Below, piece after piece: positions 15,276 to 32,470 of a DNA stretch of 32,803 bases (position 1 is its first letter; each line of letters starts with the position of its first letter). The notes under the pieces were generated by a model. That model was not told the DNA's origin. It saw only the letters and a list, made by a program, of their open reading frames with translations, and did not search any database. This DNA is from Macrostomum lignano (taxonomy: Eukaryota). Position numbers and translations under genes: made by a program. The stretch lies in the NCBI GenBank assembly GCA_002269645.1, contig NIVC01004870.1, forward strand, positions 1 to 32,803, given 5' to 3'.

Positions 15276-15885
15276 AACTTGAAATCCCAGAATCCCGATT
15301 TGAAATCCCACGATCCCAATCTAAAATCCCAGGATCCCAATCTGAAATCCCGGCATCCCAATCTGAAATCCCGGCAACTCAATCTAAAATCCCGGAATCC
15401 CAATCTGAAATCCCAGGATCTCAATCTGAAATCCCAGGATCTCAATCTGAATTCCCAGCATTCCAACCTGAAATCTCAATCTGAAATCCCAGGATCTCAA
15501 TCTGAAATCCCAGGATCTCAATCTAAAATCCCAGGATCTCAATCTGAAATCCCAGGATCTCAATCTGAAATCCCAGGATCCCAATCTGAAATCCCGGCAT
15601 CCCAATCTGAAATCCCGGCAACCCAATCTGAAATCCCGGCATCCCAATCTGAAATCCCAGGATCTCAATCTGAAATCCCAGGATCTCAATCTGAATTCCC
15701 AGCATCCCAACCTGAAATCTCAATCTGAAATCCCAGGATCTCAATCTGAAATCCCGGCATCCCAATCTGAAATCCCGGGATCTCAATCTGAATTCCCAGC
15801 ACCCCAACCTGAAATCCCAGGATCCCAATTTGAAATCCCAGGATCCCAACCTGAATTCCCAGCATAATAATCTGAAATCCAGGTA
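15276..15885. repeat. 21-bp minisatellite (AATCTGAAATCCCAGGATCTC), ~29 copies
   Basis: Direct tandem units with point variants. Confidence 0.95.
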
Positions 15886-15994
15886 CAAGTGTATCGGTAG
15901 GATGCAGAAGCCGAATATTACTAGCTGACAGTGTTAGCCCCAACAACCACTCAGCGTCAAGCCAGCCCCGGTCCGAGAGCTCGCACCAGTCCGC

Positions 15995-18900
15995 TTACAG
16001 GCCTTCAACCAGCTGCTCGATGCGAGCCACAGCGTCCTCCTTGTTCTTGACGTGCTTGGCGTCGGCGTCCAGGTACTGCTGGCGGGTGATCTTGTTGGCA
16101 ACCAGAGCCTCAGCCTGACTGGCCGCGGTCTGCAGCAGTTCAGCCAGGCGGCTGTCCTGACGCTGCAGTTCGTCAAGTCGCTCCAGCAGGTCGCCGGGCG
16201 GAGCGAAGGCCGGGTCGCTGCGGATGGCCTTCACCAGCTCAGCGACCTTCTTGGTCAGAGCTTTGTGGTCAGTAGTGACCTGCGACAGGGGCAGTAGTTG
16301 GGCATCTCTTGGTGTATAAATCTTAAAGGAAATTTCTTAGCGGGGCTCATACACAGGGAAAAGACCTGGCAGGAAATCCCAATTTCAGGGAAATTCCCAT
16401 TTCAGAGGAATCCCCATTTCAGGGGAATCTCCATTTCAGGAAAATTTCTATTTCAGGAAAATTCCCATTTCAGGGGAATCTCCATTTCAGGAAAATTCCC
16501 ATTTCAGGGGAATCTCCATTTCAGGAAAATTCCCATTTCAGGGGAATCTCAATTTCAGGAAAATTCCCATTTCAGGGAAATCCCCATTTAAGGGGAATTC
16601 TTATTTAAGGGGAATTCCAATTTTAGGGGAATTCCCATTTCTAAAATTGTGGGATATTCCCATTTCGGAAGTAAACAAGTTTTAGTGGAAGAATCCTGTG
16701 GATACTGGTAATTTCAATAGACTTCTTGGGCCGAATTCCGTGGATATAAATATTGTATTTTAGGAATTCTAAAAGACGAAATTCTTTTGCAAGGAATTCT
16801 TGAGGATATAAAAATCGATAATGGACATCCCCAGAAGCCTGACAGGGAAGTTCCCAGCGCGCCGGTGCTTTCAAAACCCTGAAATCGATCGGTTGAGGTA
16901 GAGATCCCACCTTATTAACGTCGGACTTGAACCGGCCGTGGTCTTTGCCGGACTTGAACTTGTTAATGGCGTCCTCGTAGCACTGGTACAGGGCGGAGCG
17001 CCTGTCCTGCAGGCCGACAATCTCGGAAGTCAGGCAGCCGAGGCGCTGCTTCATCTCGGTGCTGGCGTCCTGCACGATAGAGAAGTTGAGCCGCACGGCC
17101 AGGATGACGGTGAGGAACAGCACGAGGAAGAAGGTGGTGGCCATCAGCGGCTCGCGGATCAGCGACCAAGAGGCGAACTCGTAGCGGACAACCAGCTCCT
17201 GGATGTGCTGGTCCACGAGGTTGGCCTGCGGGGTGGGGGGGGGAGCTCACGGCTTCAGATTTGGAGCAGAGTAACTGACAATGTGGGATAGATCAACTAA
17301 GGGTTTGGGATAGATCAGGTGTGGGATAGATCAGCTGTAGGTTAGATCAGCTGTAGGTTAGATCAGGTGTGGGATAGATCAGCTGTAGGTTAGATCAGGT
17401 GTGGGATAGATCAGGTGTGGGGTAGATCAGGTGTGGGATAGATCAGCTGTAGGTTAGATCAGGTGTGGGATAGATCAGGTGTAGGTTAGATCAGCTGTAG
17501 GTTAGATCAGGTGTGGGGTAGATCAGGTGTGGGGTAGATCAGGTGTGGGATAGATCAGCTGTAGGTTAGATCAGGTGTGGGATAGATCAGGTGTGGGATA
17601 GATCAGCTGTAGGTTAGATCAGCTGTAGGTTAGATCAGCTGTAGGTTAGATCAGGTGTGGGGTAGATCAGGTGTGGGATAGATCAGCTGTAGGTTAGATC
17701 AGGTGTGGGATAGATCAGGTGTGGGATAGATCAGCTGTAGGTTAGATCAGGTGTGGGATAGATCAGGTGTGGGATAGATCAGCTGTAGGTTAGATCAGGT
17801 GTGGGATAGATCAGGTGTGGGATAGATCAGCTGTAGGTTAGATCAGGTGTGGGATAGATCAGGTGTGGGATAGATCAGCTGTAGGTTAGATCAGGTGTGG
17901 GATAGATCAGGTGTGGGATAGATCAGCTGTAGGTTAGATCAGGTGTAGCTTAGATCAGCTGTAGGATAGATCAGCTGTAGCTTAGATCAGGTGTGGAATA
18001 GATCAGCTGTAGGTTAGATCAGGTGTGGGATAGATCAGGTGTGGGATAGATCAGCTGTAGGTTAGATCAGGTGTGGGATAGATCAGGTGTGGGATAGATC
18101 AGGTGTGGGATAGATCAGGTGTGGGATAGATCAGGTGTGGGATAGATCAGCTGTAGGATAGATCAGCTGTAGCTTAGATCAGGTGTGGAATAGATCAGCT
18201 GTAGGATAGATCAGCTGTAGCTTAGATCAGGTGTGGAATAGATCAGCTGTAGGATAGATCAGCTGTAGGTTAGATCAGCTGTAGGTTAGATCAGGTGTGG
18301 GGTAGAGCAGCTGTAGCTTCGATCAGGTGTGGGGTTCAGTAAAATTTTCCCAGCCGCTTACCTTGCTCAGCACAAGCACGGGCCGCCCCACGGTATCCAG
18401 GTAAGTCTTAATCAGCTCCCTGGGGCCTTCGATCACAGGGTAAGGCGCCTCGTATCGAATGTTGGTGGCCAGCTCGGGCAGCACAATCTTGAGGGTGATC
18501 CGGTCCACCACCATATCGTCGTGCACGTGATCAATGAAGCGAATGCGCAGAGCATACTGGTTGCCGCTACTGAACAGGTACTCGTAGCTGGGCACATTGT
18601 ACCCGATGATGTAGTCGGTGTTCCAGCCGCCGAACAGTGGGAACCTGGGCCGCAGTTCGATCTCAACGGAGTCGATCAGCTCGCGCAGATTGGACGTACT
18701 GATGTTGCCGATGTCGTCGCGGTAGTACACGTCCTTGGCGGCGGCCGGCAGCACGGTCTTGTAGGCTCGGACGCTGGACACGCCATCGTTCTTGCGCTGA
18801 TACTCGTAGCGGGAGAAGCTGCCCTTGAGCTTGGCGCCGGAGTGGACAACGTGGATTTTCTCTTCAATAGCAACGTTGCCCCAGTGGGACACCTCGACAT

Positions 18901-21579
18901 GGCGCAGCATGTCGACGACCGTGAGGAATGGAGCGTTGTTCTCGTAGTGAACGCTCACCTGCAAATGGGGTGTGGCGGCAATCAATGCTGTCGATTGCGT
19001 TAACTAGCCGAGCAGGGTCGGGAAACTTTTTAAAAATTAAGGGTCAGATAAAGAATCTAGCGCATGACTGCGGGCCAGATGAGAGAAGAGAGAAGAGAAA
19101 AGGTAGAGATCAAGGAGATGAGAGGAGATAAGAGAGGAGGGATGAGATGAGAGATGAGAGGTGAGAAGAGATGAGAGGAGAGGTGAGAGGAGAGAGGAGA
19201 GAGAGGAGAGCAGAGAGATGGGAGAGAGGAGGGTAGAGAGATGAGAGAGAGAGGAGAGAGAGAGAGAGGGGAGGGGAGAGAGATGAGAGAGAGAGGAGAG
19301 AGATGAGAGAGGGGAGGGGAGAGAGATGAGAGAAGCGAGGTGAGAAGAGATGAGAGAGGAAAGGTGAGAGAAGGGGAGAGAGGTGAGAGAGAGGAGAGAT
19401 GAGAGAGAGGAGGGGAGAGAGATGAGAGAAGAGAGGTGAGAAGAGATGAGAGGGGAGGTGAGAGAAGAGAGGGGAGAGGAGAGAGGAGGGCAGAGAGATG
19501 AGAGAGGAAAGGTGAGAGAAGGGGAGAGAGGGGAGAGAGGTGAGAGAGAGGAGAGATGAGAGAGAGGAGGGGAGAGAGATGAGAGAAGAGAGGTGAGGAG
19601 AGGTGAGAGAAGAGAGGGGAGAGGAGAGAGGAAGGCAGAGAGATGAGAGAGGAAAGGTGAGAGAAGGGGAGAGAGGTGAGAGAGAGGTGAGAGATGAGAG
19701 AAGAGGAGGAAAAGAAAAATGAGCTGAGATTCTGACACAAATCTTGAGCGGGCCGGATTGCTATTGTGGATTTCAAAGGACCCGAGGCCCAGATAGAGAG
19801 GCTTCGCGGGCCGGAGTGTGCCGACCCCAGTGACCAGTGCCGTGAACTGCACAGCCTGCGGCCCTCGTGAGCCATGGATATTATAATATTAAAGCCTTCA
19901 TACCCTATTCTTGCTACTTTTTTAAGTAGGCGATTGCAAGCGATAAGTGAATGGAATGAATGATAGAGATTCGCACCTCCTGCTGGGTGAAGGCGGGCAC
20001 GTTAGCGAAGGGGCCGTAGGTGATGGTGGACTCCTGCTTGTTCACCGGCTGCAGGTTGGTAAAATCCAGGATGTTCGGATTGGCCGTACGAATCTGAGTC
20101 TCAACAGAGTCGCTGGGGTAGGGCGAGTAGAAATTGGCATTGCCAGTGAAGCGCAGGTACTGCCTCTCTGACTGGGTGATCTCGCTGGGGTAGGGCGCGA
20201 GCTTGTGCGTGTAGTAGGCCGTCACCACCAGGCTGGAGGGCCGCGACCCGATGGAGATTTCGTACAGCCTGGTAGAGGTTGGGGCGAGTGGCGTGCAAGT
20301 CAATAGGAACAGCTTTGAGTTATTTCAACTGCAATTCAGCACTGCATCTACAGGGCACACTCACTGCTTTCCATTCTTGGATACAGGCTTGATTGGCAGA
20401 GCTGGGCTGTCTTCACCGGATTTGGTCTAAAATGAAATAGTAATTCTATTGTTATATTTCAATCCATTACCCTAAAAAAATAAAGTATTGTGTTATCTCA
20501 TTTGTTTATTTACTATTAGAGTTCCAATCTTTCACATTTGTGCCTTTTCAAATTGGTGACTATTTTTCTATGCTTTTCTCAGTGATAACTTCATGAGAAC
20601 AATCCTCCATATTTATATATTTGAATGTTAGCCAGTGAGCCAGTATGTTATCAATAATAACAAAGTGATAAACAAATAAACCCTTAAAAGAATGTTAAAT
20701 ATGTTGTAGCATCATAGAATGTAATAATATAAGATACATGAAGTTATTAAATACATTAGTAGAGTTTTTCTATAATTTTTATTATAGGCCTAGTCAGTTT
20801 TGGTTGTAATTAAATTTACCATTTTAACAAATCATTTTATAAAAAATAAGGCTATATGTGAATAATTTGTGCTTTTAAAGATGTTTTTAACTTTTTAAAA
20901 CTTAAATAAATTCTATAGCTTTTTTGCTTTCAAATCAACAAAAACGAATTTTCAAAAAATTTGCCCTTGATTTTTGGATTTCGCCATATAATAATATAAA
21001 TATAAATAAATGGAAATCATCAATCGAACAAAGCCAAAGATTAAAAAACTGCTTTAGATCAATTCAAAGAAAATTGAATATAAATAAAAATTGGTAATAA
21101 GAAATAAAATTAAAAATTGGTATATATCAGGGGTATACTCTTATACTTGTATAGAACTAATTTTTAATCTATCACTAAATTTGTAATTTATTTTCTCTTT
21201 GCTAATTTATTTCTAAAAAAGTCTTAGTCCTAAAACGAACTTACAGTACAAACTATTAATAGGAATATCCTGAATAATTAAATTTGGAGAATTTCAAGTA
21301 AAAAATTTAATAAATTTTGGGGTTCATTATTGTTCAAAATTCAAAATGAAATTTAATGCTTACAGAGGCACCAATAAATGCCATGTTGTCCTCATAACCA
21401 GGTTCGGCAGCAAAAAGGTATGTAGAGCCAAAACTTTCAGACGAAATAACTGTTTCGATTTTGACGATTTGAGTAGTTAAATCCACTTTCCTAACAACCT
21501 TTGAGTTCTTCGCCTGCTCACTGCAGTTTGAGGCAGAAAGCATCAGCAGAAAGTAGGCAATTAGAAGTGTCTTGTCCAT
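15995..21579 (-). CDS. RPN1: Ribophorin I (oligosaccharyltransferase subunit 1), 6 exons, ~588 aa
   Basis: Exons 21579-21364, 20426-20365, 20268-19977, 18958-18362, 17225-16911 and 16279-15995; GT-AG, phase-compatible, 1767 nt. Motifs: [76 protein letters not shown] helix. Confidence 0.97.
16362..16645. repeat. 17-bp minisatellite (CAGGAAAATTCCCATTT / CAGGGGAATCTCCATTT) in RPN1 intron 5
   Basis: About 16 tandem units with partly palindromic cores. Confidence 0.9.
17283..18330. repeat. 16-bp two-variant minisatellite (TAGATCAGGTGTGGGA / TAGATCAGCTGTAGGT), ~65 copies, RPN1 intron 4
   Basis: Fills nearly the whole intron 17226-18361. Confidence 0.97.
19078..19720. repeat. GA-rich low-complexity purine tract in RPN1 intron 3
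   Basis: Almost exclusively G/A (GAGAGGAGAGAGATGA-like units). Confidence 0.95.
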
Positions 21580-22188: not shown

Positions 22189-25100
22189 ATGTCCGTTGCT
22201 ATTGCAGAGTCTTCACTTGCCAATTCAATGCAGTCAGTGAGCGGCAGTTCGAACCACATGAATCCTCAGAGTTCATCTATGCTTCCACATATGCACCACT
22301 CACCAGGTGGAAGCAGCCAATCATCTCTATCTACTTTAGCCACAGCAGCAAATATCAGTCTCCCAAAAATAACACCAGAATATTTGCAGGAACTGTTAAA
22401 AGATAAGAAGAATCTTCAAAGCCTACCAAATTTGTTCAATCATTTGGACAAAATCCTTGAAACAGGTTAGTTTTTTATATCATTGTCTTTTACTTTAGTG
22501 TATACCTTTTTATCTTAAAGAAGAATTTATAATTTTAGCTTTAAGTACAGCAATTATATTTTATAAGCTAAGAAATATTTAAATATTACAAAACTCCCTA
22601 ATATATTTATATATTGACATTGTTATTATCTAGTATTAGGACTATATATTAGGTAGTATATGACAGAATGAAATTTGCTTCCTAGCTTTTGATTTGTATG
22701 TTAGCCACTGACTTATATTACACACAAAATATACCAAGAAAAAAATAAAAAATGGCAATATATATATCTAGGCTAGGGCTTTAACTTTAAAATTAAATCA
22801 TTACAAAAATGGAACCTATTAAAAATATGCCTAATATTTTACTTAACTATAAATAATTAGTTCTTTTCTTTTTTGTTTTACTTTTGATTTTTTAGAAAAG
22901 TAAAATGCAATTTTCAGTTTAGTTGTTTGTTTTTTTATTCCTTGTTCTGTAAATCTATGTTGACAATGTTATATTTAGTCTATTTTTTGTAAAGTCACTT
23001 TATTTGAGCCTAAAATATACACAGGTAATCAGGTATGCCATAGATCTTAGCCAAAAAATGACAAGTACCCTTGTTTGCTTAAAAATCTTGGCATAAATGT
23101 CACCTTCTAATCTATAGTAGCCACATTGGTCTATGGCTACCTTGGTCTATCATCTATTATATCAATATATATGGAGACTATACTAAATTTGAACTTGGTC
23201 ATTTTTTGTTTGCCAACTGTATATTGTTGAGACTCAGAACTTTGTCTCATCTGCTATCTTGATGATCTCTATGCCAAATTATATACCAAAAGCTATACTA
23301 GATCTCTCTATATGCCTATTTAAATATACTCATTATATATGCATCTAGTATTTGTCTAGATGCAGAGGCAAGGGTCACCCATTCCACGAGCCCCTAAAGG
23401 CCCACATATAGACCATAGCTGAAAGCAGGAAGGAGTGAACCGAGTCACAAAAGAAAGAGGAAAGAAGAGAAAGAAAAAAAGGACTGCTAACTACTAGACT
23501 ACAGGACGAGTACCCCTGGGTCAACTTGCAAGACAGCATGGGAGTGGGGTCTGTGGCTGCTAGCAGCAAATAGAGGGTGTAGACCTCCCACCAGCCTTAA
23601 CTTGCTGAAGATAGAGGCAGGTGTAAAGCATCATAGACTATAGCCCATAGGCCTAGTCTGTCTCATACTTCATTGGCATACTGAATACACCTTTGTGTGC
23701 ATAAATCAGGGGATGTGCATGTATGTAGTTGCCTATTTATATATAGTTTAAATATATAATCCTACATACTAAAATTTGTAAGCTTATTACTATTTTTACA
23801 AATTTTATATTAAAAACAAAATAAGAAAACAAAGGCAAAGGTTCAAATCTGTTATTTTCTTTTTTTTTTGAAGTAAGTGGAGTTATTAAAATAGTAAATC
23901 AATATTCTTGAACTATTGAAAATCATCTAATTAGGAAATCATCCAATTCAAATTGCATAAAAGCCTATTTCTACTAAACCAGTAACAAAAAAACTAAAAA
24001 ACTGTTACTTTTGATTATGAAAATGTAAAATTGTTTGTGATCCTACATTATGTAGCTCTATACCTGGGATCAATATATGCTTACACACCTATTAGCATAA
24101 TAGGGTATTACAATTTTTTTGATGTACTCAAATATGATTATCTCTAATGTCTATGTGTTCCTTGTATAAAACTTTATGTCTACTAGGCAAAATCATATCC
24201 ACTGGAACCTCTGAAACTCTAAAAATGTGTTATTCGTGGAATTTTTCTTTTTACCATTTTTACATACTCATTTAACATTAATAATTAAAAACACTCAAAA
24301 AACACCAGAGATCACAAGAGTTCGCAGCCAGCTCTTCCACTTCAATGGCGCCAAGCGAGCATCTGACGATCTGCCTGAAGGCGAGGGCCCCATAGTGACG
24401 GTGCAGGAGAAAGTGTTCATTCCTGTGAAAGACAATCCCTCCTACAACTTTGTTGGCCGACTGTTGGGGCCACGCGGCATGACGGCCAAGCAGCTGGAGA
24501 CCGACCTGGACTGCAAGATCATGGTCCGCGGCAAGGGCTCCATGCGGGATAAGAAAAAGGTTGGCTGGCTTTTCACTTGGCCTTAGAAATGTGTTCTCAA
24601 TTAAGATCTTAGTCTGACACTCTTATTGTTATGTGGGGTATTAGACCAATGCTAATCATTAGGTGGGGTATTAGACTTACACTAATCATCAGGTGGGGTA
24701 TTAGACTGACACTCTAATCATAATGTGGGATACTAGACTGACACTAATCATCAGGTGGGATACTAGACTGACACTAATCATCAGGTGGGATACTAGACTG
24801 ACACTAATCATCAGGTGGGATACTAGACTGACACTAATCATCAGGTGGGATACTAGACTGACACTAATCATCAGGTAGGATACTAGACTGACACTAATCA
24901 TCAGGTAGGATACTAGACTGACACTAATCATCAGGTGGGATACTAGACTGACACTAATCATCAGGTAGGATACTAGACTGACACTAATCATCAGGTGGGA
25001 TACTAGACTGACACTAATCATCAGGTAGGATACTAGACTGACACTAATCATCAGGTAGGATACTAGACTGACACTAATCATCAGGTAGGATACTAGACTG

Positions 25101-26288
25101 ACACTAATCATCAGGTAGGATACTAGACTGGCACTAATCATCAGGTGGGATACTAGACTGACACTAATCATCAGGTGGGATACTAGACTGACACTAATCA
25201 TCAGGTGGGATACTAGACTGACACTAATCATCAGGTAGGATACTAGACTGACACTAATCATCAGGTGGGATACTAGACTGACACTAATCATCAGGTAGGA
25301 TACTAGACTGACACTAATCATCAGGTGGGATACTAGACTGACACTAATCATCAGGTGGGATACTAGACTGACACTAATCATCAGGTGGGATACTAGACTG
25401 ACACTAATCATCAGGTAGGATACTAGACTGACACTAATCATCAGGTAGGATACTAGACTGACACTAATCATCAGGTAGGATACTAGACTGACACTAATCA
25501 TCAGGTAGGATACTAGACTGACACTAATCATCAGGTGGGATACTAGATTCAATCAAATCCCAATTCCTGCGCCAATTCCGCAGGAGGACCAGAACCGGGG
25601 CAAGCCGAACTGGGAGCACCTGGCTGAGGAGCTGCACGTGCTCATCTGCGTTGAGGACCACCAGAATCGCGCCGAAATGAAAGCCAAGCGGGCGGCCGAG
25701 GAGATCAAAGCTTTCCTTGAGCAAGCGGTCAAGATGGTGAGGGTCCCCAGCTCGAACCTGCTAATGGGATTATTATTAATAACCGCGGGTCAGAAAGTGT
25801 CGCATCGGATTAGCCGCAACGCCAGCAGGGGGCAATCGGGGCCCTCGTCAGGATGATCGATTATTGGTTGGCTCTACTTCTGCCGTCTTCTGATGTCTTC
25901 TTCTTCTGCGAAAGATCGCCAATTGCTGTCAGACCGCTGCCCAGGGGGATTCGGGAATTCTGGACAAGGCTGGGAGAGAAATTCGATACCACTTTAACGA
26001 TCATTTGAGCGCTTTCTGTAGCTGGAATATAGGATTAGGAATTCGGCACTACTGTGGGCGCCCGCGGCCCAGCCTGTTGCCCGCCTGCCCACTTCTCTGT
26101 CGCTATTTTCACTTTCTTGAGTCCTCTGCTCAAGGCTTTCTACAACTCGGCCTCTGTTTTGATCGAATAGTGGCAGCGTTTTACTTTTCTTATCACATAT
26201 TTTACACTTAGATTTCTATTGCATTTCTGTCTGAGTCTGAATCTGCCTCATCTGCCTGTCTACCCGTGTGTGTCTATCTGTGTCTGCC

Positions 26289-26334
<46 letters not shown>

Positions 26335-29048
26335 CATCATCTCTCTATCCGTCATTTGCTACTTCTATCATTTCTGTCTCCCCCAGCTCTCACTCCCAGT
26401 CAGCCCATCACCATCGGGCGTCTTCCGTGTCAGCTGAGGGCGGCACTTTGCAGTTGCGGGGGCCTGCTTCAGCAATCACATGTGATTACGCTTGATGCCC
26501 CGGCCTGCTGCGCTGGTTCTGCCCCTTCACTCGCCTCTCTCTCATTGCTTCTGCCCACTTTTCGACTCCAGACTCCGTTCTTCATCATCATCATATACTC
26601 ATAGACTTGTAACTTATTCTCTGTCTCTCCGAGCTGCGTATTAATGTATTACTAGTATAACCGGCCCATGGCTGTAATAGAACTCTTAAAAAGGTGTTCT
26701 ACTGCTATTAGCGGGTATGTTGCGAATCGCTGCCGACTTTAATCTTAGCCAAATTTGAGCTGCTAATTTTATTCCTGTTCCTCTCCCTGTCACTGCCTCT
26801 TAATATTTTGTCCCAGCTTGCAAAAGCTACTAATCTAGAGGGAGAGGAGGCAGGGGAGGCGGCCATGCCCAGGACAGGCCGGAGGTCGATTCGCTGCCAG
26901 GCGGCTGCGACTGCCGCTGCCGCTCGTCTCTGGCCAGCAGAAGAAGCAAATTGCTGGCGGAGCCTGTGTGCTAATTAGCTGGAGCTGGGCCGGGCTGGTC
27001 CCCCAGCTTCCCCTCTGTCTCCTCGATGCCTCCTATTCCCATTTTTGAGAGAGAGAGGCTCTGTCGATCCCGGTGCCTCATCGCATCAGCTGTTCTATCG
27101 AGGCCTAACCGGCTCTGATTATCACGCTTAACCAGCCGCAAAGACTTTCTGGCTGACCGTGATCTGTCTGTCTGTCTATCTGTAGGCCTATCCTGGGTAC
27201 TCTTTCAAATTTGGAAAGTTTGTGGCATCTCTATTCAACTGTAATGTGGCAATGAGACGCCATTTTTAATATAGCATTTTGCAGCCCATCTGGGCTTGCG
27301 CGCATTTAGTTTGATCCAAGATAAGTTTGCCAATGTACCGGAGCTTTTGTCTATGGTAGCAAGGCTGGCACAGCGGCATTTGGTTTGGTCCAACAAAACT
27401 CAATTTGGTCCATAACTTCATTTGCAACTGCTGTGATGGAGCAAGATCAGTCCCGCAATTGTGGACCATATGCTAGGGCTAGGCTGTCGAACCATTGGCT
27501 TGCGATCGAAGCGCTCGACAGAGATGAAAACCCAAATGACATTGCAAGGCTGCTGAATGTAAAAGAAAATATGGTTTACAGCATCCACCAGTGTGTTGAA
27601 ACCACTGCCGGCAGAGATCGCCTGCGAAGAGGTGGCAATCGCCAAGACAAGTTGCGAGAGCCTCAGGTCCAACTGACTACTCGATGCAGTTGAGACAAAT
27701 CCTTTGTTGACGGTGCAGAAGTGCAGCAGAAGTTGAAGGAACAGCTCCAGTTAGTTATCTGATTTCGAATATCAGCAAAGCTCTAGAAAAGCGACTGAAA
27801 ATTGTTGGTAGAGACGCTGACATTCCAGCGGTACGCAATAACCAAATTGATTCTTGTTGGACCAAATTAAATGCCGCTGTGCCAGCCTCGCTACCATAGA
27901 CAAAAACTCCGTTACATTGGCTAACCTATTTGGGATTAAATTCAATGCGCGTGGGCCCAGATGGGCTGCAAAAAGCTATACCTATTGAAGCTGCCGGATG
28001 GTCAGTAGAAGCTGTTCCTGACTATGAAAGCCTTATAGTCTATGGTCGGTCCTGGTGACCGCGCTTTAGTGTGTGAACTAGGTTGACCCAATGGAATCCA
28101 GGCGCGGTTAGCGGGACTGGCCATAAACTATGACACTGCCAGTTAAACCCATTTTTTCTATACAATGGGTTGTAGCCTAGTGGTTAGAGCGGCGGGCTCA
28201 CGACTGAAAGGTTGGGGGTTCGATTCAAGACTTGGCTGTACTGGCGCACTTGTCCTACTTGAATCCAACGCAGCGCATATTCCACCCAGTATGCCTTCCA
28301 TCACTCGCACGCCTTCTCACTTAATAATCACCCGAGCCTGTCGGACTTGCTCGAGGCGTCGAGGGCCGGCTGTAAGGAATTATCCAGCGAATCTGAGGCC
28401 GCCTCCTCGCATCGAAGGGATTTGGGGTGGGTGGGTGGTGGTGTGGCTGGCGTGGATGAAGACGGGAAGAGGCACGCGCCTCCCTCCTGCGGCCCTGTCC
28501 TGCCTCGCGGCTGGGAGCCCTCATGTATCAGCCATCTCCCTGTCCAGCTCCCCACGAGAGACAGTCTGGGAGATCTTCCCCAGCAGCAACACTCTTAGTA
28601 TTAGTAATGAAAGTTTTTTAACCCCGTTGGTGAAAATTTGCTTCAACTGTCCCGAAAGGGCCAAGCAGCTGAGCAGATCAATTTGTACCCGGCACTAATT
28701 GTCCGCATTGAATTCTTTCGCTTTTGTTGGCCCACATCCTCCCAAGGGAATTCCGAAACTTTGGGTCTCGTTTTATGACTCCGCCGGATACCCCCCCCCC
28801 CCAGAAAAGTTTTCTTCCCATGTTGGCCAAGAAGCGGATGAGGGCGGCCAGATCCCCCAATTTGCGTTGGGGATTTACTCGAATCTGCGCCCCGCCACAC
28901 TTCTATCTATCCATCGGCCTGGTGGGCCTCTGCATCGATCCCTTTGCAATCAGGGACGGCTCCAGAGTCTGCCTTTCTGTCTCTGTCTGTCTTCAATAAT
29001 ATGGCCCCATTTCTCTGGCCATCTGAGTTGCACAGTTCTATGTTGCAC

Positions 29049-29099
<51 letters not shown>

Positions 29100-31775
29100 C
29101 ATTGTGTCGCAGGTAGAGCGGCGCTTTGATTCTGCCGCCTTGCAGCATATCTGTTTTCAGTTTCGTGTTAGAATGAATACGGTAGCAACAATAGCAGTTA
29201 CATAATAAATCTTAACTCCTTTTATGGAGGCTCCGTGCTCAAGTGGCGCCAGTCCTGGTCTGGCGGCCTACGCGTTTTTGGTTTTGTTAAATTTCTTTTT
29301 CAACTCGAGCCCTTGGGGCAGTATAAGATATTTATGGGAAATGTCTCTGTGTTGCATTCGTTTAGAGATGAGATGGGATACGTCAGATATTATTATTATT
29401 ATGTGCGGGATTTTGCTCAGCCTTTTATTCAGCTCAAGTCGTGCTGAGTAAAGCAGCATTCATCCATTCTTCCATTCATTCCTGTCTGATTCCTAAAAGA
29501 TCCCATATAGCTATAGAGAGCAACTGCTATCCTCATTTGGCATCAACTTCCTGTTGGAGCGTTGCTTTGGCCCGGAGTTTGAGGAGGGATGCTGGCTGGG
29601 CTGTGGTGGGTGGCCTAGTCAGGGAGACCCGGGACTGAGGATCTGGAGTGCCGAGTCCAAACTCTGTTAAAAGTCAAAAGTTGAAAGTTGATATTATTAA
29701 ATGTTCTTCATTTATTTTAACGACACAGCATGAAACTGGTCTATCCAGCTTGCCAGCAGGCCATTTGCCAGCTTTTATAAGCAGAAGTCTGGCTGGCAAA
29801 TGTCTAGCTGGCAAATGTCTAGTTGGCAAGTGTCTAGCTGGCAAATGTCTGACTGGCAAATGTCTAGCTGGCAAATGTCTGACTGGCAAATGTCTAGCTG
29901 GCAAATGTCTGACTGGCAAATGAGGTACACTGTGTTAGGGCTATAAGTCTGTCAAGGATTGGGAACTCAAGGATGCGAGGGTTCGTAGAGTGAAGAGGCT
30001 GGCAATGCCAAATTCTAGTATGCGATCTCCCCTGACCCCATTGCTCTTCCCCTGCTGGCTACTTCCGGTGCCTCATCGTGAAGAAAGACTGGCTATTGTT
30101 GTGCAGATTCAATGCTTCATTTTAACTAATGCCTTATATTATAGTACTGCTATGCAATCATGATTTTATATGAATGGCGTTCTGGCTGTCAAAAGATAAA
30201 TTATTTTTTTTCAAAAAAAATTATAGCAAACTCATCACCGCACACCCGCCCTGATTCTAGCCTGAGAGTGAGGACAGGCTCAAGCAGATGCAGCTCATGG
30301 AGGTGGCCGTGCTCAATGGTAAATTGGTTGACAACCGTCTCAGCTGCTGTTCTGAGCGCTCAATATGTACTTACATGTAGATTGGTTGGTCTAACAACAC
30401 GCGATCAGTCAGTTGTGTTCTCTACTCACTACATGTACTCTGCGGTCTCTGTAACCCCAATGTATGCTTCTTAATCTTAATCTTGTTGCTACAAGCATTT
30501 ATGCAGCATTAACCCTCTGATTGCGAGATAATGCAACTGGGGGCCGTCACCAGTGCTCTGGCTTTATTGCACATTGAATTCCGGAGAGCTTAACAAGCTG
30601 TCTCGGTTCAGTGACCAGGCCAAATCTGCTCTTAAACCTTCTGCTTATTTTCAACTAATTTTGAGTGCCATTTTTTGTAAACATTGTAAACTGTTTTTTT
30701 TCAACTGGGACTGCTTCTGGCATTGCATTTTTAAACCAAAATTATTCTCGCTTCATACTGCACATTGTGAGCAGGGTGACCCGAGTCTGAAGCCTCTCAT
30801 TGTTCCACCCGCGTGCCAAGCCCAGCAAGCTGCTCAGGAGACACCAGCTAAAACTATAAAGCCTTCAATTCATTCTCTCTCTCTCCGCAGCGCGCTCGGA
30901 TGTGCTGCATCATTCGAATAATAAAGATAGAGAGGGAAATTGAGAGAGAAAAGCCTCGAAATTCGTGCCAGCGCCTGCTCACAGCCTGCTTGCCCAGCGT
31001 GCCTTTAATAAAACTTGAGCCTGCCTGCTGTGCTTGTTGAGAGGGGTGGGGGCTTGGCAACTAAGCGAATGAAGTTTTAGTTTCTGCGGGTGGCGCCGCT
31101 GCGGGGGGGGGACACCACAGTGCTGAGAGTGTGGCCTCTCTGTGCGCATGGGCTGTGTCTGTATGATTACTTGACTCTGCGCTGCGGCTTGAGATTGAGT
31201 TGGTTAACAATTCGGGTTTGTGAGAAATAGCATATGAAAGAGAGGGGTTGAGAGGGTCCACTAGGGCCGTCCTAGGTTTGCGTATTTGCGACGGAAAAAA
31301 TGCGAGAATTCATTATTATTAATGAGAGTTTCATTATTTCGATTCACAATATGCCCGGTTTTGGGAGGAAACAAACCGCATTTTAACTTTGCTTTGCTTG
31401 TTAATTTACTAAGATTTATTGCTTTTAGTTATTTGTATGTGCCAACTGCATTGATGGGGAGGGGTTGGGCAGTCCAGTTTCTCGCCTAGCTTGTACCGTA
31501 TCAGTCCCAGCGGTCCATGAGCGCGGCCTGAGAGTCAGCAGACTGTCGAATTCATTGCGTGTTTACAGCCAGACGGCGAGGACGACCTGAAGAAGAAGCA
31601 GCTGATGGAGCTGGCCATTATCAATGGCACCTATAGGGACACCAGTAAGAAAGGCGGCGGCGGCGGCGGCTCGTCCAGCTCTGCTGGAGGGCAGTCGGCG
31701 GCTGCTGGCGGCGACAATCCCGCAGCTGCCGCTGCTGCGCCGCTTCGCTGCACTCAACCGCCTCCTTGGCGTTGC
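22189..31775 (+). CDS. qki: STAR-family KH RNA-binding protein (Quaking/HOW/ASD-2/GLD-1 type), 3' end probably beyond window
   Basis: Exons 22189-22465 (QUA1 [23 protein letters not shown]), 24309-24559 (EITRVR...[18 protein letters not shown]...[15 protein letters not shown]), 25584-25736 ([28 protein letters not shown]) and 31569-31775 ([24 protein letters not shown]). Splice phases are compatible. Exact orthology within QKI/HOW/GLD-1 is not resolved. Confidence 0.93.
24641..25547 (+). repeat. 30-bp minisatellite (TACTAGACTGACACTAATCATCAGGTRGGA), 27 full + ~3 degenerate copies, STAR gene intron 2
   Basis: Full units run from 24731 to 25540 at an exact 30-bp period. There is one recurrent G/A variant site (14 G, 13 A by my count). 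Confidence 0.98.
26282..26330. repeat. (TCTG)n microsatellite
   Basis: Direct reading. Confidence 0.9.
27272..27978 (+). mobile_element. Tc1/mariner(IS630)-superfamily internally deleted DNA transposon with ~140-bp TIRs and TA TSD
   Basis: Left TAGCATTTTGCAGCCCATCTGGG...GGTCCAACAAAACTCAATTTGGT is the reverse complement of right ACCAAATTGATTCTTGTTGGACC...CCCAGATGGGCTGCAAAAAGCTA. TA at 27270-71 and 27979-80. The interior encodes a degenerate HTH ([27 protein letters not shown]...[10 protein letters not shown]). No DDE domain seen. Confidence 0.85.
28167..28240 (+). mobile_element. tRNA-derived SINE head / tRNA pseudogene (Val-CAC-like loop)
   Basis: A-box TAGCCTAGTGGTT (28173), loop CTCACGA, B-box GGTTCGATT (28217). 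Anticodon and T stems (GCGGG/CTGAA, GGGGG/CAAGA) do not pair. Confidence 0.6.
29053..29095. repeat. (CT)n microsatellite
   Basis: Direct reading. Confidence 0.95.
29793..29922. repeat. 15-bp tandem repeat (CTGGCAAATGTCTAG), 9 copies, preceded by inverted partial copies
   Basis: Units at a 15-bp period. Inverted CATTTGCCAGC at 29762-29772 and CTTGCCAGC at 29749-29757. Confidence 0.9.
30261..30380 (+). CDS. qki: Alternative (duplicated) QUA2 exon 4a of the STAR gene
   Basis: Acceptor GATTCTAG|CCT is phase 0, as exon 3 requires. Encodes [20 protein letters not shown], then either a donor G|GTAAAT at 30319 or read-through [19 protein letters not shown] (TAG 30378-80). Confidence 0.8.
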   Translation, partial: PESEDRLKQMQLMEVAVLNGKLVDNRLSCCSERSICTYM

Positions 31776-31974: not shown

Positions 31975-32470
31975 CTCTCAGCTGTCTGCCTTCCAGCTCT
32001 CAGCTGTCTCCCTTCCAGCTCTCAGCTGTCTCCCTTCCAGCTCTCAGCTGTCTCCCTTCCAGCTCTCAGCTGTCTCCCTTCCAGCTCTCAACTGTCTCCC
32101 TTCCATCTCTCAGCTGTCTCCCATCTCTCAGCTGTCTGTCTCCCTTCCAGCTCTCAACTGTCTCCCTTCCAGCTCTCAGCTGTCTCCCTTCCAGCTCTCA
32201 GCTGTCTCCCTTCCAGCTCTCAGCTGTCTCCTTCCATCTCTCAGCTGTCTCCCTTCCATCTCTCAGCTGTCTCCTTCCATCTCTCAGCTGTCTCCCTTCC
32301 ATCTCTCAGCTGTCTCCCTTCCATCTCTCAGCTGTCTCCCTTCCATCTCTCAGCTGTCTCCCTTCCATCTCTCAGCTGTCTCCCTTCCAGTTATCAGCTG
32401 TCTCCCTTCCAGCTCTCAGCTGTCTCCCTTCCAGCTCTCAGCTGTCTCCCTTCCAGCTCCCAGCTGTCTC
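31975..32470 (+). repeat. 22-bp pyrimidine-rich minisatellite (CTCTCAGCTGTCTCCCTTCCAG), ~22 copies, STAR gene intron after exon 4b
   Basis: Direct tandem units with CCAG/CCAT variants. Confidence 0.95.

Follow-up and report, generated by a model that had tools for sequence, protein, structure and literature searches.

Tandem alternative QUA2 exons in a Quaking/HOW-type gene of Macrostomum lignano and their conservation in flatworms

Results

Two QUA2 exons in one gene

Exons 4a and 4b of the Quaking/HOW-type gene of Macrostomum lignano constitute a genuine isoform switch of ancient origin that lies within the RNA-binding domain. We dismiss the reading as a dead duplicate because flukes and tapeworms have conserved this pair as well. 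It is probable that the two exons are an ancient tandem duplicate, that they are mutually exclusive, and that they endow this Quaking/HOW orthologue with two isoform classes. Each exon would join exon 3 (phase 0) on one side and exon 5 (phase 1) on the other, with 4b contributing the canonical bilaterian QUA2 helix and 4a a flatworm-specific variant.

The window that we analyzed is the whole 32,803-bp M. lignano contig NIVC01004870.1, which holds the 5' two-thirds of a STAR gene of QKI/HOW type (Table 1). The coding exons match M. lignano proteins at 100%, and the gene is 60-70% identical to QKI and HOW across the STAR domain. A QUA1 homodimerisation region lies N-terminal to the KH domain (Pfam STAR_dimer PF16544, E = 2e-19, residues 61-108), the KH domain is of the extended (maxi) type (PF22675, E = 1e-12), and its columns GPRG…CKIMVRG.GS.RDK are invariant in the alignment. 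The match to the QKI structure PDB 4JVH (E = 2.8e-74) runs from residue 6 and continues ungapped through 4a and the start of exon 5. The QUA1-KH-QUA2 architecture is the same as that of QKI, HOW, GLD-1 and ASD-2 (PDB 4JVH, 4JVY, 2MJH), with all KH residues conserved, and a paralogous M. lignano copy has a C-terminal tail that, like those of QKI-5 and HOW(L), closes with an RxHPYxR motif. Judged by its sequence, the gene is the M. lignano orthologue of Quaking/HOW, a STAR protein of the QUA1-KH-QUA2 type.

Table 1. Features of the STAR gene in the window (all on the forward strand; a slash marks the splice site)
Feature	Position	Strand	Description
Exon 1	22189..22465	+	ATG, Ser/Gln-rich N-terminus, QUA1 (PF16544); donor CAG/GTTAGT, phase 1
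Exon 2	24309..24559	+	End of QUA1 and N-terminal part of KH; phase-0 donor
Minisatellite, intron 2	24652..25547	+	30-bp unit, 29.8 copies, 97% matches
Exon 3	25584..25736	+	C-terminal part of KH and KH-QUA2 linker; donor ATG/GTGAGG, phase 0
Exon 3 donor read-through	25737..25856	+	C-terminus of model PAA46417.1, annotated on the same contig
ACTAAT	30125..30130	+	136 nt upstream of 4a acceptor; chance-level
Exon 4a	30261..30318	+	58 nt, phase 0 to 1; divergent QUA2 helix; exon 5 lies outside the window
4a donor read-through	30319..30381	+	Stop at 30379-30381; no coding support
ACTAAT	30654..30659	+	336 nt downstream of 4a donor; chance-level
Exon 4b	31569..31644	+	76 nt, phase 0 to 1; canonical QUA2
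Downstream of 4b donor	31645..31775	+	Coding in WormBase/UniProt models and in the first reading; probably intron

Frames and exclusivity

An earlier note on this DNA had described 4a and 4b as tandem paralogues, each coding for one of two alternative QUA2 helices in a single STAR protein, and their comparison bears this out. The exons share 43 of 58 nucleotides and 11 of 19 amino acids, are separated by an intron of 1,250 nt, and are both matched by human QKI in a tblastn search of the window, in the right frame and order (E = 1e-4 and 4e-8). Both acceptors are AG in phase 0 and compatible with the exon 3 donor at 25736, as had been proposed. Both donors are in phase 1 (AATG/GTAAAT after 30318 in 4a, ACCA/GTAAGA after 31644 in 4b). 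Spliced to exon 5, 4a reads …VAVLN/ETNRAPS…, and the corresponding junction of 4b is predicted to read …TYRDTKTNRAPS….

The frame incompatibility of the two exons was also correctly recognized. Joining 4a to 4b adds 134 nt (58 + 76), which shifts the frame and leads to a stop about 25 codons on, while skipping both makes a phase-0 end meet a phase-1 start. Since the inclusion of both exons or of neither shifts the frame, a productive mRNA contains exactly one QUA2 helix. We found no dedicated mechanism of exclusivity: neither docking/selector RNA pairing nor a short-intron steric block was found, and all sites are of the GT-AG class. A search for docking and selector sequences revealed no inverted repeats that would pair the introns upstream of 4a and 4b; it yielded nothing beyond a MITE-like pair of 140 nt and a local hairpin against a 15/30-bp array that lies upstream of 4a. 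The sole evident mechanism of exclusivity is thus frame incompatibility, presumably acting through nonsense-mediated decay.

Residues of the QUA2 helix

Residue roles were taken from the NMR study of GLD-1 KH-QUA2 and from QKI mutagenesis (PMC4081071, PMC5626755). The QUA2 residues D187, K190, Q193, L194, A198 and R205 (QKI numbering) are invariant in the 4a and 4b forms, and the invariant QUA2 residues are carried by alignment positions D174, K177, Q180, L181, A185 and R192. Exon 4a also keeps N201, and the first codons of exon 5 provide the R205 of its isoform. The same holds for every flatworm 4a isoform, in which the next exon places an Arg at this position (ETNR, DKDR, DKER, ESDR). A loss of TYRD from 4a had been suggested in the earlier note; this loss is incomplete, the Arg being restored by the next exon.

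The entry loop and cap are canonical in 4b (G185, a basic residue at 191, and N-G-T-Y-R) but not in 4a, which has S185, Q191 and N-E-T-N-R. Substitutions of like class occur in all flatworm 4a-type exons, which systematically alter G185, the basic residue 191, and G202/Y204. This departure lowers the claim of 4a to be a canonical QUA2 and leaves the membership of the gene in the family unaffected. The loop glycine G185 shapes the pocket for the 5'-most U in GLD-1 (PMC4081071), the basic residue 191 contacts the 5' phosphate, and D187 forms a salt bridge to the KH domain (PMC4081071, PMC5626755). Note that the K190A/Q193A mutant of QKI shows just a 2-fold drop of affinity in vitro (PMC5626755), so that substitutions elsewhere in the helix region could matter little. 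An AF2 model of the 4a STAR domain (mean pLDDT 66) placed a helix at the QUA2 position with pLDDT below 50; the model consequently does not inform packing and was not used for a fold search.

A biochemical difference in RNA reading between the 4a and 4b proteins is likely, if we infer from these residues. The 4a isoform keeps the base and backbone contacts K190, Q193, L194, A198, N201 and R205 and replaces G185, the basic residue 191 and the G-T-Y cap. The two isoform classes would have in common their dimerisation through QUA1 and their recognition of the UAAY core by the KH domain; the difference would lie in the affinity or specificity with which they bind the 5' extension of the (U)ACUAAY element.

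Transcripts of M. lignano

Exon 4a is used in M. lignano transcripts. Three GenBank models derived from RNA-seq (PAA80226.1, PAA64328.1 and PAA84600.1), located on three near-identical genomic copies, splice exon 3 to 4a and 4a to exon 5, omitting 4b. The phase-1 donor that had been read after 4a is therefore real. This annotation was built by StringTie, TACO and de novo RNA-seq with an isoform-fraction filter of 0.75 (PMC5730564) and consequently retains dominant isoforms. None of the available RNA-seq-based M. lignano models contains 4b, and a homologue search with the end of exon 3, 4b, exon 5 and exon 6 as query returned no Macrostomum isoform, its matches being canonical or driven by low complexity. 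The sole M. lignano models with 4b (UniProt A0A1I8GFL6 and A0A1I8HVJ9) read past the 4b donor and so leave the junction at 31644 untouched. We infer that 4b is used in M. lignano and that the two exons exclude each other at the RNA level.

Both exons are intact in all four M. lignano genomic copies, and 4b has good AG/GTAAG sites in each. Variable sites among the copies number 0/58 in 4a and 0/76 in 4b, against about 2% in the intron; with only about 2% of columns variable, the copies are too alike for selective constraint on 4a and 4b to be read from them.

Conservation in flatworms

The Echinococcus multilocularis and Schistosoma japonicum loci carry a 58-nt 4a-type exon, then a 4b-type exon, and then a common downstream exon. 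The duplicated exon is found in both genera, with the 4a type at the same length. Across what is about the deepest split of Rhabditophora, 4a is identical at 14-16 of 19 residues, with 7-10 codons differing only synonymously, and 4b at 18-20 of 24 residues in the same comparison (M. lignano, Echinococcus, Schistosoma). The M. lignano 4a is nearer to the 4a of S. japonicum (16/19) than to the 4b of its own gene (11/19). Isoforms of both types are annotated in Echinococcus, Hymenolepis and Taenia, and the annotated trematode isoforms are of the 4a type in Fasciola and the 4b type in Echinostoma. In Echinococcus and Echinostoma, annotated 4b-type isoforms join the common downstream exon. Both exons are conserved phylum-wide, and both isoforms are used in parasitic flatworms.

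In a collection of about 210 QKI-family sequences, only flatworms have the LKQ…AVLN type that lacks GTYR. An exhaustive representative search with a 4a-type profile added Clonorchis, Opisthorchis, Echinostoma, Cichlidogyrus and one UniParc entry, and it met the 4a type nowhere beyond the flatworms; a word-indexed search with a 44-column profile of this type gave no candidates. We also considered, and rejected, a protein with two QUA2 helices, as suggested by models with both exons in Paragonimus and oyster. In flatworms such a protein needs intron retention, and the Paragonimus model runs on through an intron (LNDSIPLIFKEIKFLMCLQ), as artefactual predictions typically do.

These data refute the view that 4a is a decaying, unused pseudo-exon, which now has next to no probability. 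It is true that 4a lies farther than 4b from the bilaterian QUA2 consensus, is shorter, and lacks GTYRD. However, three RNA-seq-based models include it and skip 4b, and an exon of the same length and phase, with 14-16 of 19 residues identical, is used in annotated cestode and trematode proteins. The dead duplicate envisaged in the earlier note, with neither 4a transcripts nor conservation, is therefore contradicted on both counts.

The converse idea is that M. lignano uses 4a alone and that 4b is a conserved-looking relic, or a poison exon that lowers protein output. In its favor, no transcript-based model of 4b exists for M. lignano and the 4a-4b junction leads to a premature stop; QKI-family autoregulation is also known (PMC5695090). 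We nevertheless regard it as unlikely: 4b is identical to the oyster b' exon at 21 of 25 amino acids, remains intact with good splice sites in the four copies, and has counterparts in annotated 4b-only isoforms of cestodes and trematodes, and a poison exon needs no full canonical QUA2 reading frame.

Read-through of the donors

The frames stay open beyond the donors of both 4a and 4b, which raises the question of alternative terminal exons. The pair could then give short-tailed proteins by donor read-through, in the manner of QKI-6/7 or HOW(S), with a Cys-rich tail after 4a and a Gly/Ser/Ala tail after 4b. The WormBase and UniProt models adopt the 4b read-through. However, the 4a tail is not conserved in the E. 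multilocularis or S. japonicum loci (across the four M. lignano copies, 3 of its 64 alignment columns are variable), the 4a donor is spliced in the models built from transcripts, and the 4b tail is shifted out of frame by indels across the four copies. We consider such terminal exons very unlikely. The dominant-negative form that had been imagined from the stop and Cys-rich tail of 4a finds no support, given the lack of conservation of the tail and the splicing of the donor.

The stretch after the 4b donor is probably intron. From about position 31738 onward, indels of 1-2 nt among the four genomic copies shift any read-through frame past 4b, and a phase-0 position at 31775 is incompatible with exon 5, so that coding to that point, as first read, is not sustained. 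A truncated isoform without QUA2 is annotated on the contig, but its origin is read-through of the exon 3 donor and not 4a; the model in question, PAA46417.1, is either a QUA2-less truncated product or unspliced RNA.

ACTAAY motifs and the intron 2 array

The minisatellite of intron 2 carries an ACTAAT and a 5'-splice-site-like CAG/GTRGGA in each unit, with 28 sense-strand ACTAAT at a spacing of 30 nt. It is also found in the paralogous M. lignano copy with a different copy number. This array is real and extreme, and it invites the proposal of an autoregulatory switch in which the protein binds ACUAAU near 4a and in intron 2 and so chooses its own QUA2 exon. Autoregulation of mammalian QKI and ACUAA branch-point competition are documented (PMC5695090, PMC13004596). 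Against this, ACTAAY outside the array occurs 21 times where 30.6 are expected by chance, the array lies 4.7 kb upstream of 4a, and tandem repeats make up 15% of the M. lignano genome (PMC5730564). No array is seen in the Echinococcus and Schistosoma loci, which have no ACTAAY at conserved positions and no positional counterpart of the motifs at -136 and +336. We consider such a switch quite unlikely. Of the two ACTAAT motifs said to flank 4a, the one at 30125 is confirmed and the other lies at 30654 rather than about 30645; the feedback role given to them is countered by their chance-level frequency and lack of conserved position.

Discussion

Comparison with known exon switches

QKI-5/-6/-7 and HOW(L)/HOW(S) are likewise functionally distinct isoforms produced by alternative splicing of one STAR gene. 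In these proteins, alternative 3' exons alter localisation signals and leave the RNA-binding surface unchanged; described members of the QKI subfamily have a constant STAR domain and isoforms that vary only downstream, whereas the flatworm gene encodes the QUA2 helix twice, and its 4a is missing three features that hardly vary elsewhere in the family, namely G185, the basic residue 191 and the GTY cap. Autoregulation and cross-regulation of QKI isoforms are documented in mammals (PMC9786888, PMC5695090).

Mutually exclusive, tandemly duplicated exons by which one portion of a binding domain is exchanged are established in FGFR2 (IIIb/IIIc), PKM (exons 9/10) and tropomyosin. Another such pair is OGDH exons 4a/4b (PMC7969005). 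The flatworm exons share with these systems the adjacency of homologous exons, equal phases, frame-incompatible joint inclusion and long conservation; they differ in swapping the RNA-recognition helix of an RNA-binding protein. Mollusc QKI genes in RefSeq (Crassostrea, Magallana, Saccostrea, Mytilus, Biomphalaria) form another parallel, with two alternative QUA2 exons at the same position of the gene, both in phases 0 to 1 and both joining one downstream exon. Their order is also that of flatworms, the M192/L200 type coming first and the R/K192/I200 type second. However, both mollusc exons keep G185, K191 and NGTYRD, while the flatworm 4a is divergent. The mollusc exons measure 94 and 127 nt, with only 98 nt between them, whereas truncation has left the flatworm 4a with 58 nt.

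Sam68 and T-STAR (PDB 5EMO, 5ELR; PMC4735526) are among the structural matches to the query. Their QUA2 region is reported not to contact RNA in the QKI manner. By analogy, they are a possible precedent for QUA2 variation that changes the length of the RNA motif read. They make up a separate paralogous gene family and are not the product of an alternative exon; 4a retains the QKI-type contacts.

Evolution and significance

A more far-reaching account can be offered tentatively. The switch would date at least from the ancestor of Rhabditophora and possibly from Spiralia, and it would provide two domains that read the bases 5' of UAAY differently and serve distinct sets of targets. The older, spiralian date is favored by the oyster pair, which agrees in its order, in its phases and in the signature of M192/L200 versus K/R192/I200. 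Flatworms would then have specialized the upstream copy, with loss of the U-pocket glycine and of the phosphate-contacting basic residue, and 4a isoforms, 4b isoforms and QUA1-mediated 4a/4b heterodimers may regulate different targets in different cell types.

QKI, HOW and GLD-1 are textbook RNA-binding proteins, with one RNA-binding domain and isoforms that differ only in their tails. Our literature searches brought up no STAR protein for which alternative QUA2 exons are described, and the 4a and 4b isoforms are known only from database models, several of which wrongly fuse or truncate the two exons. Annotation, RNAi and expression work in Macrostomum, planarians, schistosomes and tapeworms currently assumes one protein. 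If our reading is correct, a single STAR gene can yield proteins with different RNA-reading surfaces. The residues switched are exactly those that shape the pocket of the 5'-most nucleotide in GLD-1, and the exon pair would thus be a natural experiment on how QUA2 tunes the specificity of the KH domain.

The gene and its exons

A tblastn search with human QKI-5, used only as a probe, revealed four coding blocks in collinear order on the + strand, the last of which was duplicated as a weaker second copy. The best matches of the assembled exons were M. lignano proteins (100% identity), followed by several hundred QKI/HOW/GLD-1-type proteins with 55-70% identity over the STAR domain. STAR_dimer and BBP-type KH domains were detected in the window protein (Pfam), and the closest solved structure was that of QKI STAR-RNA (PDB 4JVH; E = 2.8e-74). 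Since the window encodes PAA46417.1 (BOX15_Mlig002858g1), a member of the top cluster, and matches the contig of that protein, it represents one whole contig of the Mlig_3_7 assembly. Its end cuts the QKI gene, so that exons 5 and 6 are missing; these were found in L001, L004 and L005, three genomic copies of nearly the same sequence, multiple copies being expected for the recently duplicated M. lignano genome (PMC5730564).

Exons of the QKI-type gene, and repeats, in the window
Feature	Position	Strand	Remarks
Exon 1	22189-22465	+	ATG, QUA1, phase-1 donor
Exon 2	24309-24559	+	
Exon 3	25584-25736	+	ends …FLEQAVKM; donor ATG|GTGAGG, phase 0
Exon 4a	30261-30318	+	58 nt, phase 0 to 1
Exon 4b	31569-31644	+	76 nt, phase 0 to 1
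Tandem array	15280-15880		21/42-bp
Tandem array	16372-16641		17-bp
Tandem array	17302-18333		16/48-bp
GA-rich tract	19077-19729		extreme GC skew
Intron-2 minisatellite	24652-25547		30-bp, 29.8 copies, 97% identity
Intron-3 inverted repeat	27270-27409 / 27841-27980		140-nt, 87% complementary, arms 431 nt apart
24-nt element	29750-29773		complementary to each unit of next array
Tandem array	29787-29922		15/30-bp
Repeat in intron 3' of 4b	31975-32470		22-bp CTCTCAGCTGTCTCCCTTCCAG, 22.6 copies

Two paralogous QUA2 exons and their use

Translation recovered the two QUA2 peptides of the earlier note in place and confirmed their paralogy (43/58 nt and 11/19 aa identical) and phase-0 entry, each after an AG acceptor; 4a encodes 19 residues before a G|GTAAAT donor and 4b encodes 25 before A|GTAAGA. 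Serial joining of 4a to 4b produces the anticipated frameshift, with a stop ~25 codons on. This frame incompatibility is the only evident mechanism of exclusivity; RNA pairing able to enforce it was looked for and none was found. The reading frame that continues past 4a does contain the Cys-rich tail described earlier (stop at 30379-30381), but it has no support as coding sequence, being unconserved and the 4a donor being used. An end of the 4b region at 31775 could not be upheld: it would be a phase-0 end, and no reading frame is kept around it because the four genomic copies differ by 1-2-nt indels from ~31738.

Transcripts do include 4a. PAA80226.1, PAA64328.1 and PAA84600.1, encoded on the three other genomic copies, read exon 3-4a-exon 5-exon 6 with 4b skipped (…EQAVKM|4a (19 residues)|ETNRAPSLMPAG…) and end in a QKI-5/HOW(L)-like manner (…LRAHPYSRPGV). 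The exon 5 acceptor is ccgcag|AGACCAAC, and the final G of 4a together with the AG of exon 5 therefore gives Glu at the junction. The GenBank annotation of M. lignano was not ab initio, having been built from genome-guided StringTie/TACO assembly and a de novo transcriptome; TransDecoder supplied the ORFs, and the isoform-fraction filter was set to 0.75 (PMC5730564). Because the annotation is RNA-seq-based and filtered in this way, the 4a isoform is transcript-supported and probably predominates in whole animals.

The only M. lignano models with 4b were UniProt/WormBase entries A0A1I8GFL6 and A0A1I8HVJ9, both of which continue beyond the 4b donor, where the frame shifts from one genomic copy to another. 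We infer that 4b is also used in M. lignano, and the indirect case is strong, because 4b shares 21/25 aa with the oyster b' exon, is intact in 4/4 genomic copies, and has a phase-1 donor fitting exon 5 (predicted junction …TYRDT-K-TNRAPS…).

PAA46417.1, the model on the window contig, passes the exon 3 donor into 25737-25856 (stop near 25854), resulting in a QUA1+KH protein without QUA2. The Logan-assembled transcript P0003 also runs past this donor, with an unrelated tail; given 89% identity to the window protein, its source is probably a related species or a diverged copy. The read-through could be an intronic-polyadenylation isoform or merely unspliced RNA. In other database models, including P0010 (Paragonimus), P0185 (Hymenolepis-like), P0006-P0009 (oysters) and A0A1I8GFL6, QUA2 exons are fused through the intron or the 4b donor is read through; these look like annotation errors arising from the exon duplication.

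Conservation in flatworms and molluscs

Related species, where the earlier note proposed to look, do carry the duplicated exon. In Echinococcus multilocularis (L002) and Schistosoma japonicum (L003), an exon encoding …FLEQG(L/V)RT precedes a 58-nt 4a-type exon (PEDKDLLKQTQLMELAVLN+G and PENEDRLKQLQLMELAVLN+G, respectively), the 4b-type exon lies 2.2 kb further on in Echinococcus (24 residues…) and 9 kb further on in Schistosoma (PDGEDQVKKRQLMELAVINGTYRA…), and a common exon, (D/N)KERQQAQ… or DKDRQQAH…, follows both. Annotated flatworm proteins carry one type or the other: 4a and 4b, respectively, in Echinococcus (P0094, P0011), Hymenolepis (P0068, P0026) and Taenia (P0070, P0064); among trematodes, 4a in Fasciola, Calicophoron, Schistosoma and Clonorchis and 4b in Echinostoma (P0182); and 4b in the monogenean Cichlidogyrus. 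Phase 1 is conserved, since in Echinococcus and Echinostoma both types reach one downstream exon via a split codon (G, A or C + AT). Between species, 4a is identical at 14-16/19 aa, with 7-10 codons showing synonymous differences only, and the M. lignano 4a clusters with the 4a exons of other species and not with its own 4b. The duplication is therefore older than the Macrostomorpha-Neodermata split, and both copies have been retained under protein-level constraint.

Two alternative QUA2 exons are likewise present in mollusc QKI genes (oyster, mussel and snail). The Crassostrea angulata locus (L006) has a 94-nt exon (31 residues) ahead of a 127-nt exon (28 residues…); each runs from phase 0 to 1, has a C|GTAAGT donor, and is spliced to one shared next exon. 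Because the mollusc and flatworm pairs agree in order, phases and the M192/L200 versus K/R192/I200 signature, a shared origin in Spiralia is suggested, though not proven. Both mollusc exons are canonical, whereas flatworm 4a is shortened and divergent, a type found only in flatworms among the ~210 sequences inspected. The exons are separated by 1.25 kb in M. lignano, compared with a 98-nt intron in the oyster (L006 21158-21256), where an ACTAAY precedes the second acceptor by 44 nt and the geometry could impose steric exclusivity.

Predicted RNA recognition by the two helices

The exons were placed on QKI and GLD-1 numbering (QKI unless GLD-1 is named) via HMMER alignment to 4JVH and 4JVY. D187, K190, Q193, L194, A198 and N201 are common to 4a and 4b. 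D187 forms a salt bridge to KH, and Q193, L194 and A198 make up the adenine pocket (PMC4081071, PMC5626755); K190 hydrogen-bonds the C of UAC, and the equivalent GLD-1 K313A causes a 65-fold loss of affinity (PMC4081071). R205, whose backbone reads adenine and whose side chain touches phosphate (PMC4081071, PMC5626755), is also kept, the following exon supplying it in 4a isoforms (ETNR in Macrostomum, DKDR in trematodes, DKER in cestodes, ESDR in P0184). The earlier reading that 4a loses TYRD is only partly right; the restored Arg, a conserved feature of the splice junction, had been overlooked.

Four differences in 4a are systematic: G185 is replaced by S, N or D, K/R191 by Q, I200 by L, and G202-T203-Y204 by acidic/polar residues. 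In GLD-1, the 5'-most U sits in a pocket formed by the G308-D310 loop, and the G308E allele causes loss of function; K/R191 contacts the 5' phosphate, and substituting it has mild effects (PMC4081071). AF2 predicted the 4a segment to be helical, at low confidence. It is reasonable to expect from these residues that the 4a isoform would read the CUAAY/UAAY core normally and would handle the two 5' nucleotides differently, or bind more weakly.

ACTAAT motifs and repeats

ACTAAT motifs do flank 4a (30125 and 30654), but their density is that of chance, and a functional meaning is not supported. The window holds 49 ACTAAY matches, of which the intron-2 minisatellite accounts for 28; 21 lie outside it, where 30.6 ± 6.1 would be expected by chance. 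The feedback proposed through motifs beside 4a is not supported. The Echinococcus and Schistosoma loci showed neither a positional equivalent of these motifs nor a counterpart of the minisatellite.

Every minisatellite unit contains, on the sense strand, ACTAAT (QKI/branch-point-like) and CAG|GTRGGA (5'-splice-site-like), and L001, a paralogous copy, also carries the array but with another number of units. Each 22-bp unit 3' of 4b resembles a sense-strand polypyrimidine tract with a CAG 3' splice site, and copy number differs among the four genomic copies. The intron-3 inverted repeat is probably a MITE-like transposon insertion. The 24-nt element and the array that follows it (29750-29922) precede the 4a acceptor by 340-500 nt and might fold into alternative hairpins; their pairing showed no link with 4b. 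Alignment to L001 places the ~15280-19730 arrays in the region of a ribophorin I gene, the minus-strand neighbour of the QKI gene in head-to-head orientation.

Significance

Full-text literature searches turned up no description of alternative QUA2 exons in QKI, HOW, GLD-1 or another STAR protein, nor any account of this gene in flatworms; the 4a/4b isoforms are present only in databases, as models that have drawn no comment, several of them wrong (exons fused, donors read through). Mutually exclusive splicing of tandem exons and the gene family itself are already well known. What is new is the site of the switch, QUA2, and the degree of its conservation.
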